A stretch of 64,000 bases of DNA, taken from assembly GCF_016433145.1 (NCBI RefSeq), contig NC_058130.1, forward strand, positions 710,237,874 through 710,301,873, written 5' to 3'. Source of the stretch: Gracilinanus agilis (Eukaryota). Position numbers and translations under genes: made by a program. The stretch's first letter is position 1, and each line of letters begins with the position of its first letter. The notes below the pieces were generated by a model that saw only the letters and a program-made list of their open reading frames with translations, was not told the origin of the DNA and did not search any database. Positions 36,544 through 62,047 of this stretch are shown here, in pieces.

Positions 36544-36941
36544 NNNNNNNNNNNNNNNNNNNNNNNNNNNNNNNNNNNNNNNNNNNNNNNNNNNNNNNNN
36601 NNNNNNNNNNNNNNNNNNNNNNNNNNNNNNNNNNNNNNNNNNNNNNNNNNNNNNNNNNNNNNNNNNNNNNNNNNNNNNNNNNNNNNNNNNNNNNNNNNNN
36701 NNNNNNNNNNNNNNNNNNNNNNNNNNNNNNNNNNNNNNNNNNNNNNNNNNNNNNNNNNNNNNNNNNNNNNNNNNNNNNNNNNNNNNNNNNNNNNNNNNNN
36801 NNNNNNNNNNNNNNNNNNNNNNNNNNNNNNNNNNNNNNNNNNNNNNNNNNNNNNNNNNNNNNNNNNNNNNNNNNNNNNNNNNNNNNNNNNNNNNNNNNNN
36901 NNNNNNNNNNNNNNNNNNNNNNNNNNNNNNNNNNNNNNNNN
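36544..36941. other. Assembly gap (398 N)
   Basis: Run of N flanked by a poly-C tract and a 21-bp tandem repeat. Confidence 0.99.
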
Positions 36942-57618: not shown

Positions 57619-58393
57619 TATTTCTTTTGTAGTGGAGGAAGGATACTGTATTAAATGCCTTATTAGATGAGATACTGTCACTCTCTTTTGGGAAAACCCT
57701 AGACATGAGACAAACCTAAGATATGTTTTAAAAATTTCCCTAAAGTTCTATTCTGGGGTGGGAGTATAATAAATGAGAGACAATATAAAAAAAATCTGAC
57801 CCTTCTTTTAGAAGCCAGACTACCCCAGGACTTGGTTCCAAATGGGGCCAGAACCAGGAACTATTAGTGTCAGAGAAAGACTGAAATCTTTGGATAATAG
57901 TGTGTGATCGAAGGTGAAGTGAGGGTTTAGGAAAGGAATGGTGTAGGGAATAATCTAAATCAAAACATGGAGGTGCTATGGCACCAATCAGGTCTTTAAA
58001 ATTGTAGTCCAACTCCCACCTTTTACAAATTGGAAAACGGACCCAGAGAATGTAAGTGACTTTCCCAATGTCACATAGGTAACAATAACCAGAGTTTGGA
58101 TTCTAACCTAGGTCCTCTGTCTCCAAATCAAGTATTTTCCCCAGTTTTAGCAGGGAGAAAGCCCACATTGAAAGATATATATATATATATGTATATATAT
58201 ATATCTAATATCTAATAATGTATAATCTAATATATCTAAAGGCTAATATATAAATCTGAAGACTGGGAAAGTGGAGGGGGAGGGAGTCCCAGGCCCCATT
58301 CCTATCCCCCAGGCTACAACTTGGGACTCCCCAGACTCTGGGAAGATTTCTAGACTATTATGTCTTCTAACCTTTCCCCCCTGCCCTCCCCCA

Positions 58394-58394
<1 letters not shown>

Positions 58395-58439
<45 letters not shown>
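58395..58439. repeat. (CA)n microsatellite
   Basis: About 22 CA units, just beyond the RTBDN poly(A) signal. Confidence 0.99.
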
Positions 58440-58441
<2 letters not shown>

Positions 58442-58481
58442 CACAAGAAGCAACTGAGTCTTGGGCTCTGTAGCTGTGCAT

Positions 58482-58487
58482 TTTATT
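58482..58487 (-). terminator. RTBDN: RTBDN poly(A) signal
   Basis: AATAAA on the minus strand, about 235 nt after the stop codon. Confidence 0.65.
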
Positions 58488-58721
58488 CAAGGAGTCACTG
58501 TTGTACCCTATTCCCCCGAGCTGATCAGGCCAGGATCTGAGGACAAAATCTGGGGGCACAGCATGGGGAAGCCAGTGGGAGGTAGCTGGAGTTGAGGGAA
58601 GGAAGGCTGCTGAGAGGTAGTTTCTCATTGACTCCACTGAGGTCCTGAATGTCAAGGTTCCCAGCTCTCATCTAAATCCTCCTTCCTTTCCAGCTCCCTG
58701 CACCTGAACAGGGTGCACCCT

Positions 58722-58988
58722 CTAGGGGCCGCTACCGCTACCGCTGCCCCCGCTGCCACTGCCAAACCCCACTGGAGGGAGGAGCAGTGAGCGGCGTCTG
58801 AGCCGGTTGTTCCGGGGCCCTCGAGGTCGGGGCAGTCGCCCGGCTGGGCAGGCGGTGCTGAATGGGGTCTCTGGGCCAGGTGGCTTCGAGTCAGAGATGG
58901 AGAGCTGAAGGCAGGGACAGGGAGCAGGTGCAGCAACCAGGTAGTCTCCCAGAGCAGAATTGCACAGGTCTCGGGCATCCAGGAAGGT
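58722..58988 (-). CDS. RTBDN: Retbindin, last coding exon (267 nt)
   Basis: ctgcag|ACC TTC... encodes TFLDARDLCNSALGDYLVAAPAPCPCLQLSIS...RLRRRSLLLPPVGFGSGSGGSGSGSGP*. It shares the human-like LC.SALG motif and terminal GSGSGP. Confidence 0.92.
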   Translation of the reverse strand, partial: TFLDARDLCNSALGDYLVAAPAPCPCLQLSISDSKPPGPETPFSTACPAGRLPRPRGPRNNRLRRRSLLLPPVGFGSGSGGSGSGSGP

Positions 58989-59349
58989 CTGCAGGACCAG
59001 ATCAGGATCAATAGCATTTGAGGGTCAGGGTTAGATCTCTATTTAGTTGGGGAAGGAGGTAAGAGGTGAGACTAAGGGTAGAGGAGAGGAGCTAAGCAAT
59101 CAATGAAGTGGGGAACCAGGATAACAAGAGAATAGAGCCCTGCTCATAGGATGAGGGCCAGATATGAACCAGGTGGCAAGGGAGGCGGTGAGGTTCATGT
59201 TTAGTGTCTTTCTGAGAACCTGTAGGCTCAAGGAGAGAGGGGGAGGTCAGATAGGGGCTGGGCCAAGACCATGGGAAAGTAAAGTATAGAGGACCATGAC
59301 CCTGTAGGACCTGGGGCCACTTGGACTTGGACTTTTGGTGGGTCCTCAC

Positions 59350-59446
59350 CTGGTCAAAGGTGAGACAGCCACCCTCACAACTCCCTCCTTCTGGTTGGAA
59401 GAGCCAATTCCGGCCACAGGTCAGGTCATCTCTGCAGGCTGAAAAC
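59350..59446 (-). CDS. RTBDN: Retbindin, coding exon 4 (97 nt)
   Basis: Encodes FSACRDDLTCGRNWLFQPEGGSCEGGCLTFDQ; donor |gtgagg. Folate receptor / riboflavin-binding protein Cys pattern. Confidence 0.93.
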
Positions 59447-60275
59447 CTGAGCAGGGAGAGAGACAACTAGGGAATCAGGGTCTCAGAAATGGAAGTTTTG
59501 CTAGTGTAGTCCTACCCTTTCTTTCAACACTCCAGACTCAGGGGACAGGGGTCTGAACTGACAAAACTAACCAGCCATAATTGGAGCTCAGGTGTCCTGA
59601 TCCCAATCCCAGACTCTTGTCCCTTCTCATGACTGGATTACTAAACAAATGACTTCTCAGAAACCAAGTTTCTGTCTTCAGTGGATGCTGCCTAAGCAGT
59701 TTTATTTGCTTTCCTAAAGTTAGGCTTTGGCCATATCCTTTCCCCACTTCAGTCGAAAATACTCTGTGGCCACAAACTCCAATCCAAATATTCAAAATCC
59801 TCTGACTTGTGGCCCATTCTCCAACCCTGTTTCTCACAGCCTCCCTATTCCAATCTCCCTAGGCTACCCATAGCCAGGCAAGTCTCTATACCACCTCCCC
59901 TCTCCTCACCTACCCCCTGTCCCACCCCCCACATGAAGGTGCCCCAGGTCTTCCTGCCTCTGGAACTTAATCACCATGGCCCCACCTGGAATGACCCACT
60001 GGGGTCTCAGCTTCTTCCACCTTCTACCACAGCTAGATTAATAGCATCATTTGGTCAAGGATGACCAGGACAGAACTCTACAGCAGGCTCCTTTGCACCT
60101 TAATTGAAATTTCTGCCTTCCTTGTGGACCCCCCCCCCCCCCAGTACTGTCTCATTCCTGCCTCCCTCCAGTCAGGTCCCTCCCCTCAAACTGCCTCAGA
60201 CTCCTAACTATATTTCTACCCTAAGGCAAGCTCTCAGAAGGGCCCATTCATGCCCTTGAGTTTATCCACTCTTAC

Positions 60276-60404
60276 CACTGGTCACAGAAAGCAGCACAAA
60301 CTGGCAGGGCCTGGACACTTCCATGTTTCTCAGGATGGGCCCAGTTGCCTGCCAGTGATGAGCAGTAGAGGAAACGGGAGAGGCTTTGTAGAAAGGTTTC
60401 ACAC
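60276..60404 (-). CDS. RTBDN: Retbindin, coding exon 3 (129 nt)
   Basis: ctccag|G TGT GAA... encodes CETFLQSLSRFLYCSSLAGNWAHPEKHGSVQALPVCAAFCDQW; donor |gtaag. Confidence 0.9.
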
Positions 60405-60706
60405 CTGGAGGAGCCCAGGAGAGATTACAGATTAGAGAATGCAGAGCCTCAGACAACTGACTCTGAAGACACATAACCAGCAGAGTAGCCTAGGGCAGCA
60501 GGGACTGTAGAGTGTTCGGAGGGGGAAGTAATTGAAGCCCAGATTTTTTTTCTAGGTTAGACTTAAAGTGATGTGGGGCATCACTATGGCTGTGTCCTTG
60601 AGTGTCTTCAAATACATGTAAAAAGCATGCAAATCCTCTAGTGCATCAATTATCCATCTATTCCAGGATGGTCCAGCAGTGGAAGGGATGGAAGGACTAC
60701 ACTCAC

Positions 60707-60767
60707 CTGGGGCTCAGGCCCCCACAGCGGTCCCAAATGAGGCAGATGCCTGCCATTATGGGGGAGC
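60707..60767 (-). CDS. RTBDN: Retbindin, coding exon 2 (61 nt)
   Basis: ttttctcttccaccccag|GC TCC CCC... encodes GSPIMAGICLIWDRCGGLSPR; donor |gtgagt. Phases match both neighbours. Confidence 0.8.
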
Positions 60768-60949
60768 CTGGGGTGGAAGAGAAAAGGTAAGTTTTGCTGG
60801 AAGAGGGACTGTCACATGGGATGGAGGACATCAGCTAGGACTGCCCTCCCCTGAAGTTCTTTGGTCCTGGAATGTGAGAGGGACTCTTGTTGCTCTTGGG
60901 GCCTCCATGGGAAGCAAGATTATGGTGACTTGAGTCAGCCTTAGGGTAA

Positions 60950-60952
<3 letters not shown>

Positions 60953-60985
<33 letters not shown>
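60953..60985. repeat. (GT)n microsatellite in an RTBDN intron
   Basis: About 16 GT units. Confidence 0.99.
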
Positions 60986-60986
<1 letters not shown>

Positions 60987-61082
60987 TTTTCCTAAATGAA
61001 TTCAGAGAGGTGGGAAGTCCAGAGAGAAGGGGAACTATCTGTCTATCCTAGGAAGATCAGAAAGGGGAGGGATATCACTTAC

Positions 61083-61269
61083 CAGTAGAACGGAGTCCAC
61101 ACCAACTTGGTGCCCCATCAAACTTGGGCTCCTTGTTGACTTGTTCAGTGCCTAGGCATTTGGAGCTAGCAGCACCACCATCATTTCCAGCCAGCCCTAA
61201 GGTCCCTGGGGTCCCCAGCAGACTCATAGCCCAGGCTAGACCTAGGACCCAAGTCACGCTGCCTCTCAT
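61083..61269 (-). CDS. RTBDN: Retbindin, first coding exon (signal peptide; 187 nt from the ATG)
   Basis: ctcag|GTG GAC ATG (as in the human ...SQ|VDM junction) leads to MRGSVTWVLGLAWAMSLLGTPG...KCLG...WCGLRST G|gtaagt. The full CDS, complement(join(58722..58988,59350..59446,60276..60404,60707..60767,61083..61269)), is 741 nt = 246 aa. Confidence 0.85.
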
Positions 61270-62047
61270 GTCCACCTGAGGATCAAAAACTGAACTGAGT
61301 CACTGCACCAGAGTCTTCCTTCATAGTGCCTTTGGGGATAACAGGCTTATTGTCCTTTCTGGTCTGTCTTGGTCCTTCTCTACTACCCCTCCTCACAGCA
61401 ATATATAGTCTGGGTGGGGGGTCCACCTGGAAGATAAGTTTTTTCAGGGCACCCAGCTTATCCTGCCTAGTGCTGCCTTATCATCCCTAGGATCCTTGAT
61501 TTTCAACACATTTTTAACTCTTTCTCCTTCACCAGGGACCCTGCCTGCCAGTCCCATACCACATGTACCAAACTACTGCCTCCCAGATCTACACTACCAG
61601 CAGGATCCTGTCTTACTGATTTCCAGACTCCTCAGCTCTGCACCTTCATCCAGGTTCTGCTCTAGTCTAAGCACTGGTGACCTTGACAAAAGCCAGGGCC
61701 ATGGTTACCACAACCCTACCCCCCATCCCTCCTTCATTCTGCTAAGGCAAATCGGCTTAGCTGTAGCTGCTCACCCTCAACCCTTCGCACTGTCTGGGCC
61801 ACGTGTGACCACAGAGAGCCCCATCTCTGCATCTAACTAGTTGCCTGGCTCAATTAGGGCTCAGGTAAAAGAGTTTGGGAGAGCAAACTCCAGGAGAACC
61901 CTAATCCCCAGAATCAAAATATTTGCTCCTCCAAAGGAATTCCGGGGCTAACCGAAAGGTTAAATCCCAAAGAGGAGGTCAAGGGAGGGCTCGGACTTGT
62001 CTCTTGCTCCCTCTAAATCCCAAGACCTTGGCCTGGTGGGATTTTAC

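Follow-up and report, generated by a model that had tools for sequence, protein, structure and literature searches.

Retbindin (RTBDN) is found extracellularly in the retina of mouse and human, where it binds riboflavin (Wistow 2002; Kelley 2015, cited in PMC9298789). For the mouse protein, riboflavin binding has been reported both in vitro and in vivo, and mice need retbindin to keep up flavin levels and photoreceptor health. Retbindin would have to bind riboflavin by some means other than the classic aromatic sandwich. The homology between retbindin and the riboflavin-binding protein (RBP) of the egg has been published since 2002 and marsupial retbindins are already annotated; the comparison presented here is incremental and modest. 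Our literature search found no paper linking retbindin or RBP with marsupials or monotremes. We have analyzed a stretch of 64,000 nucleotides (nt) from Gracilinanus agilis, here called the window, which carries a five-exon gene on its minus strand (61269-58722). We regard it as likely, from the sequence comparisons described below, that this gene is a functional, intact and expressed marsupial orthologue of RTBDN, descended from a vertebrate RBP gene, and that its product would be a slower-evolving retbindin and not a surviving egg RBP. The difference in rate would then follow a functional shift that marsupials share with eutherians. The predicted product is a secreted, cysteine-rich protein of the folate-receptor fold.

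The assignment to the family starts from single exons, which were searched one at a time, while full-length work was done on a proxy opossum protein (P0022). Exon 3 alone passes the Pfam Folate_rec profile (PF03024; 36.2 bits, E-value 7e-9, gathering cut-off 29.8), and exon 4 reaches 16.5 bits at profile positions that adjoin those of exon 3. Among all PDB sequences the best and only significant match of exon 3 is chicken RBP (6hce_A, E-value 1.1e-6). Over residues 81-123 the two align gap-free, and these residues are exactly the string that the first-pass annotation had given for the chicken protein; exon 4 goes on at residues 124-143. Chicken RBP (6hce) is also the best PDB sequence match of the proxy. 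Two shorter likenesses noticed earlier were found again: the SPI segment of the proxy, whose exon 2 is identical to that of the window, aligns without gaps to chicken RBP (GSPIMAGICLIWDRCGGLS to HSPIIKVSNSYWNRCGQLS), and CPCLQL lines up with CLCLQM of chicken. When exon 3 was searched exhaustively, marsupial proteins came up, and from these we reached 43 eutherian and 4 marsupial retbindins as well as many proteins of reptiles, amphibians, lungfish and fish. In NCBI the related marsupial proteins are called retbindin and the non-mammal ones retbindin or riboflavin-binding protein-like. In a maximum-likelihood tree the marsupials are sister to 37 eutherian retbindins, and the therian clade (support 99) is nested among non-mammal RBPs; the opossum row in this tree is 84-100% identical to the window exons. 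The word-index and exhaustive protein searches returned no bird or monotreme protein, and chicken RBP was compared via PDB alignments only.

The gene model has a coding sequence of 741 nt that translates into 246 amino acids with 16 cysteines, the number given before. Its start and stop are those of the first-pass annotation (58722-61269). All four introns follow the GT..AG rule, and the sole run of N in the window (36544-36941) does not touch RTBDN. The parts of the gene are the following:

61083..61269, minus strand: exon 1, 187 nt; ATG at 61269; ends in phase 1
60707..60767, minus strand: exon 2, 61 nt; GSPIMAGICLIWDRCGGLSPR
60276..60404, minus strand: exon 3, 129 nt; (R)CETFLQ...CDQW; the most RBP-like part; phase 2 at both ends
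59350..59446, minus strand: exon 4, 97 nt; FSACRDDLTCGRNWLFQPEGGSCEGGCLTFDQ; 12-nt deletion common to all therians
58722..58988, minus strand: coding part of exon 5, 267 nt including the stop at 58724-58722
58469..58721, minus strand: 3' untranslated region; AATAAA at 58487-58482; poly(A) junction at about 58469

Exon 1 encodes a signal peptide and an N-terminal part that does not resemble RBP and contains KCLG and WCGL. The last cysteines (LCN, PCPC, TAC) come from exon 5, as do a basic Pro/Arg stretch and a (GS)n-GP tail. The lengths of exons 1 to 5 in other species are given here next to those of the window:

turtle: 168, 100, 129, 109, 258 nt
window: 187, 61, 129, 97, 267 nt
Sminthopsis: 172, 61, 129, 97, 258 nt
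aardvark: 169, 85, 84, 97, 228 nt
marmot: exon 3, 111 nt

Exon 3 has kept its ancestral length and phase (129 nt, as in turtle) in the window and in Sminthopsis. In eutherians an internal deletion removes the CS...W..HP segment from this exon, and it does so in 43 of 43 species. The earlier idea, based on a human segment that is shorter and lacks the CS...W motif, can be extended to eutherians of many orders, and none of the non-primate eutherians in the alignment retains the marsupial features. The core of the claim stands because the deletion is not confined to primates. Exon 4 lost 12 nt (4 codons) relative to the 109-nt turtle exon, in marsupials and eutherians alike. One could argue that the contrast between marsupials and eutherians is an artefact of eutherian gene models with mis-called splice sites, and several eutherian entries are indeed predicted isoforms that differ in N-terminal length. 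However, the deletion lies inside the genomic exon 3 of marmot and of aardvark, both with ordinary AG/GT boundaries, and it recurs in every one of the 43 eutherian proteins. We consider such an artefact extremely improbable.

How far the marsupial protein lies between RBP and eutherian retbindin can be put into numbers. A hidden Markov model (HMM) trained on 30 proteins, all of them non-mammalian, gives marsupials (3 species) 135-145 bits and eutherians (43 species, mean 63) 41-78 bits, and the two ranges do not overlap. Against chicken RBP itself, turtle scores 209 bits, opossum 89 and lemur 46. The mean identity to 29 non-mammal proteins is 35% for opossum and 27% for lemur, the latter being equal to the published value for human retbindin (PMC9298789); to eutherian retbindins the opossum protein is about 38% identical. 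There are 94 columns in which at least 10 of 12 non-mammalian RBPs agree; 22 of these columns are kept by the window alone and 7 by the eutherian consensus alone (binomial p = 0.008), 30 are kept by both groups and 35 have changed in both. From the therian node the marsupial branch measures about 0.54 and the eutherian branch about 1.4 substitutions per site; the shared therian stem has 0.69, and sauropsid lineages have about 0.2-0.3 from the amniote node. These values support the view that marsupial retbindin is quantitatively intermediate between non-mammal RBP and eutherian retbindin, and this holds beyond primates because all 43 eutherians show the deletion and the lower scores. The first-pass annotation had spoken of a snapshot of the shift from egg vitamin carrier to retinal protein. 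The intermediate character of the protein is borne out by HMM and bit scores, identity, branch lengths and columns; a protein that still does the work of an egg carrier is not supported, given the changes in the flavin pocket and the lost cluster described below. The first-pass annotation had also proposed that marsupials keep much more of the ancestral RBP fold, and the models lend this no support. AlphaFold2 models of the opossum proxy (predicted local distance difference test, pLDDT, 63; residues 24-56 at the N-terminus below 50) and of lemur retbindin (pLDDT 65) both have 6hce as best PDB match with a template modelling (TM) score of 0.42. Since the two scores are the same and the models are of low to moderate confidence, the fold comparison does not discriminate between opossum and lemur. 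The best PDB matches of the opossum proxy model (pLDDT 63) are 6hce, Juno and FOLR1/2, with TM scores of about 0.4.

The flavin pocket bears on function. In chicken RBP the isoalloxazine ring is reportedly sandwiched between Tyr75 and Trp156, as Monaco is said to have described in 1997. Positions 92 and 173 of 6hce, which correspond to a signal of 17 residues plus 75 and 156, are exactly a Tyr and a Trp. A preprint describes a cleft of RBP flanked by Trp and Tyr. Tyr is found in the first column in 11 of 12 non-mammals and Trp in the second, again in 11 of 12. Both columns hold Leu in the window and in all marsupials, as they do in eutherians (43 of 43 for the Tyr75 column, 42 of 43 for the Trp156 column). 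Because mouse retbindin is reported to bind riboflavin despite lacking the Tyr/Trp pair, the therian pocket must work differently, and the marsupial protein shares this derived pocket. The DWxW loop is lost in marsupials and eutherians. The acidic/serine cluster in front of the last RBP cysteine is present in chicken, turtle, lizard and caecilian and is gone in all therians. We take this stretch to be the phosphoserine region that chicken RBP requires to be taken up into the yolk. Both the aromatic pair and the acidic/serine cluster, which are hallmarks of the egg carrier, thus appear to have been lost before marsupials and eutherians split, or in parallel.

The possibility that marsupial retbindin is still a maternal riboflavin carrier resembling egg RBP, acting in uterine fluid, shell coat or milk and standing midway to a retinal protein, has to be weighed against these losses. 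It would fit the full-length exon 3, the retained W of YWNRCG, the CxC pair and the partner of the last cysteine, the RBP-profile score of twice the eutherian value, and the purifying selection on the gene. Yet Leu replaces both flavin-stacking aromatics, just as it does in eutherians, the acidic/serine cluster known from sauropsid RBPs has been deleted, and exon 1 has no RBP similarity, and we hold this explanation to be improbable. A surviving carrier role in egg, uterus or milk finds no support in our data, and expression in uterus, shell coat or milk is speculation. By orthology only, the role of marsupial RTBDN may be extracellular flavin handling as in the mouse retina. A related and very doubtful thought is that the slow marsupial retbindin keeps a further function outside the retina, as a riboflavin carrier from mother to embryo or in milk, being the gene behind the mammalian 'riboflavin carrier protein' of pregnancy, and that the eutherian acceleration marks the loss of this function. 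The protein of pregnancy has long been reported and to our knowledge was never cloned.

The sequence upstream of RTBDN gives no guide to the tissue. GGATTA and CTAATTG sites lie about 590-640 nt upstream of the ATG, but neither is conserved in Petaurus or Sminthopsis, and as photoreceptor promoter motifs they are evidence neither way. No oestrogen-response element was found upstream of the ATG. A TATATAT motif (61407-61401, minus strand) precedes the ATG by about 138 nt. Within 200 nt upstream of this codon, in 61330-61480, there are several GATA-like motifs (GATAAG/CTTATC).

The cysteines tell a similar story of shared and separate changes. We number the 18 RBP cysteines in order as C1-C18. 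C5, C6, C9-C15 and C17 are kept by essentially all sequences compared. C1, C2 and C7 are lost in all therians, and C2 and C7 are presumably disulfide partners, by analogy with the folate-receptor disulfide map. Every marsupial has C8, C16 and C18, and 43 of 43 eutherians have lost all three; the cysteine of the distal TAC, which had been suggested as a possible partner of RBP C202, does fall in the column of C18. C4 is kept in 28 of 43 eutherians and is Gly in marsupials. In total the window retains 14 of the 18 columns (all except C1, C2, C4 and C7) and has two cysteines at new positions. The new cysteine in exon 2 (ICL) occurs in 5 of 5 marsupial sequences. The one in exon 1 (KC) is found in the window, in the opossum sequence L001 and in Petaurus, and is deleted in Sminthopsis, where a deletion of five codons in exon 1 takes out KCLG and leaves an odd number of cysteines (sequence L003). 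In exon 5 of L001, PCPC has become PCPF, with Phe at C17, again giving an odd count. As the number of cysteines differs from one marsupial to another, the disulfide network is not strictly fixed at its periphery.

At the N-terminus the marsupial protein is not the conservative one. KCLG and WCGL had been equated with C5 and C24 of RBP, and this equation fails. Exon 1 scores 0.2 bits against the non-mammal RBP HMM, and in phmmer the part of the opossum protein that aligns to chicken begins only with exon 2. The exon 1 sequence of turtle and aardvark closes with LG.CQL.... or LG.GQL...., and a CC pair opens their exon 2. The marsupial counterpart is LGTEQVNKEP, followed by about 14 further exon 1 codons that are found in marsupials only and hold WCGL. 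Marsupial exon 2 begins 13 codons later than that of turtle; its 5' end is 39 nt shorter and it lacks the ancestral CC pair, which most eutherians have kept. Given the boundary shift, the 0.2 bits and the start of the phmmer alignments, KCLG and WCGL are not demonstrable homologues of C5 and C24. As a candidate relic of the old 5' part of exon 2 we considered an in-frame PCDSP upstream of the acceptor in intron 1. It was rejected: the frame is not conserved in Petaurus and Sminthopsis, and alignments to exon 2 of turtle or aardvark do not clearly beat shuffles. The change in RTBDN is a mosaic: the marsupial protein is conservative in its centre and towards the C-terminus and more rearranged at the N-terminus.

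Transcripts of close relatives agree with the gene model. Logan contigs from two related organisms (90-95% identical) were aligned to positions 58300-61700 of the window. Spliced contigs join 58988 to 59350, 59446 to 60276 and 60767 to 61083, and a loose contig end at 60707 runs on into the start of exon 3. In one run (X7) a loose end with a T-run before 58469 marks a poly(A) tail just beyond AATAAA. A cDNA-like contig of 993 nt from a close relative (L001, assembly GCA_029782595.1) contains the whole coding sequence. Its five exon blocks abut exactly (207/208 to 209, 269 to 270, 398 to 399, 495 to 496), and it ends at the same AATAAA. Exon 1 rests on the open reading frame, the GT donor at 61082-61081, the joint of 60767 to 61083 and the abutment with exon 2 in L001. 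Since the related-species contigs and L001 match the model at every junction, the exon structure on which the first-pass annotation was built is confirmed. L001 itself, an intron-less copy of the full retbindin mRNA from near the start codon to AATAAA, is either a cDNA that entered the assembly or a processed retrocopy of recent origin.

Some contigs depart from this pattern. In one run of a related opossum 60403 is joined to 61083, so that exon 1 leads to exon 3, exon 2 is skipped and the frame is shifted, and other related-opossum contigs retain intron 2 (60274-60768). These are probably minor or unproductive isoforms. The Petaurus annotation (L002, 6980-6991) uses an acceptor 12 nt upstream that adds GSSR in front of exon 3. 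The same 12 nt are in frame in the window and lack the AG, and it is at the downstream acceptor that the RNA contigs of opossum are spliced. A Monodelphis entry, retbindin isoform X3 (P0001, 277 amino acids), enters the last exon by an upstream acceptor in a different frame and has unrelated sequence in place of the last cysteines and the GS tail. The same frame is open in the window, where an alternative frame of 128 codons covers 59038-58655 on the minus strand.

The ratio of nonsynonymous to synonymous substitutions (dN/dS) was calculated by the Nei-Gojobori method exon by exon and then summed. It is 0.38 between the window and L001 (dS 0.13), and opossum against Petaurus or Sminthopsis gives 0.26-0.32 (dS 0.35-0.43). 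For the cysteine-rich core it falls to 0.15-0.19 in comparisons that involve Petaurus or Sminthopsis; the core value for the pair of window and L001 is 0.36, with very few differences behind it. At the protein level exons 2 and 4 hardly vary among marsupials. The exon 2 protein is identical in the window, L001 and Sminthopsis and has one change in Petaurus, and comparisons with or between Petaurus and Sminthopsis have 0-1 nonsynonymous and 5-7 synonymous differences in this exon. RTBDN is, judged by these ratios, functional and constrained by purifying selection in marsupials. It might still be thought that the gene is decaying and that its RBP-like look reflects slow neutral drift. The odd number of cysteines (15) in two marsupials, the ratio of 0.38 between the two opossums, an exon 1 that diverges about as fast as the introns, and the exon-2-skipping and intron-2-retaining contigs could all be read in this way. 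However, the frame is intact in the four complete models (window, L001, Petaurus and Sminthopsis), which span approximately the whole living marsupial radiation, the core and exons 2 and 4 are conserved as described, and correctly spliced, polyadenylated transcripts exist. Decay is hence very improbable. The Macrotis protein on record is a 200-residue prediction with a divergent N-terminus and stands outside these four models.

Taken together, we favor a slower-evolving retbindin in marsupials. Most of the departure from the egg-carrier form would have occurred on the stem to marsupials and placentals, with loss of the flavin-sandwiching Tyr/Trp pair, of one disulfide, of a four-residue loop and of the acidic/serine cluster, which contains the phosphoserines in chicken. 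After the split the eutherian lineage would have evolved about 2.5 times faster, deleting part of exon 3 and losing three more cysteines. The marsupial lineage, under purifying selection, would have kept exon 3 and these three cysteines while its N-terminus was rebuilt, with new boundaries of exons 1 and 2 and two new cysteines. Several points weigh against this account. The full-length searches and folds rest on the proxy P0022, which is about 90% identical to the window protein (84-100% per exon). The naming of Tyr75 and Trp156 as the stacking residues is corroborated only by the two positions in 6hce and by the cleft described in the preprint. The cysteine count varies among marsupials, with 15 in the L001 opossum and in Sminthopsis. 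Finally, as the comparison covers marsupials, eutherians and non-mammals, the shared changes can be dated no more closely than before marsupials and eutherians separated, and some of them could be parallel.

The C-terminus of the family has a feature of its own. A dibasic site, an acidic stretch and a GSGSG end (KRSVF.EDVEGSGSGF) are conserved from fish to reptiles (P0006, P0075, P0084-P0086, P0088), and the therian counterpart is RRRS...(GS)n-GP (window 58725-58800). The chicken chain in 6hce ends earlier and does not have it. This end looks like a putative proprotein-convertase site with a possible glycosaminoglycan attachment motif, and we know of no described function for it. Close to the gene, (AC)n/(GT)n microsatellites are found at 58383-58449, just past the 3' end of RTBDN, and at 60946-60994 inside intron 1.

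The comparison yields a dated order of steps from an egg vitamin carrier to a retinal protein, a comparative detail and not a new type of system. The pocket and the egg-targeting tail would have changed before marsupials and placentals split, and the placental protein would then have diverged unusually fast. The marsupial version is the conservative one, in which exon 3 is ancestral and three ancestral cysteines are present in addition, and the opossum protein may be a useful, better-behaved stand-in for work on structure and binding. With eutherian RTBDN the window gene shares the orthologous clade, five coding exons and their phases, the 97-nt exon 4, Leu at both stacking positions, the loss of the C2-C7 pair and a C-terminus with a basic stretch followed by (GS)n-GP. 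It differs in sequence (about 38% identity), in its 129-nt exon 3 compared with 111 or 84 nt, in keeping C8, C16 and C18 and in evolving about 2.5 times slower. Moreover, it lacks the CC pair of exon 2 and the N-I-S glycosylation motif, and has a longer exon 1 and two lineage-specific cysteines. With chicken RBP (6hce) and the reptile, amphibian and fish proteins it has in common the predicted folate-receptor fold, the length and phase of exon 3 and its gapless alignment, 14 of 18 cysteine columns, the motifs ACRDDLTC.RNWL and PCxCL and, for the reptile and fish proteins, the dibasic site plus GSGSG C-terminus. In contrast to these non-mammal RBPs, to which it is about 35% identical, it has Leu in place of Tyr75 and Trp156, has lost C1, C2, C4 and C7, has the DWxW loop and the acidic/serine cluster deleted, and begins with 60 residues that are unrelated in sequence. 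The folate receptors alpha and beta and Juno (IZUMO1R) share the Pfam family PF03024 and, by prediction, the fold, and are the next-best PDB matches; they differ in scoring 22-35 bits compared with 89 for RBP, and the window protein has a different C-terminus without a glycosylphosphatidylinositol-anchor signal.

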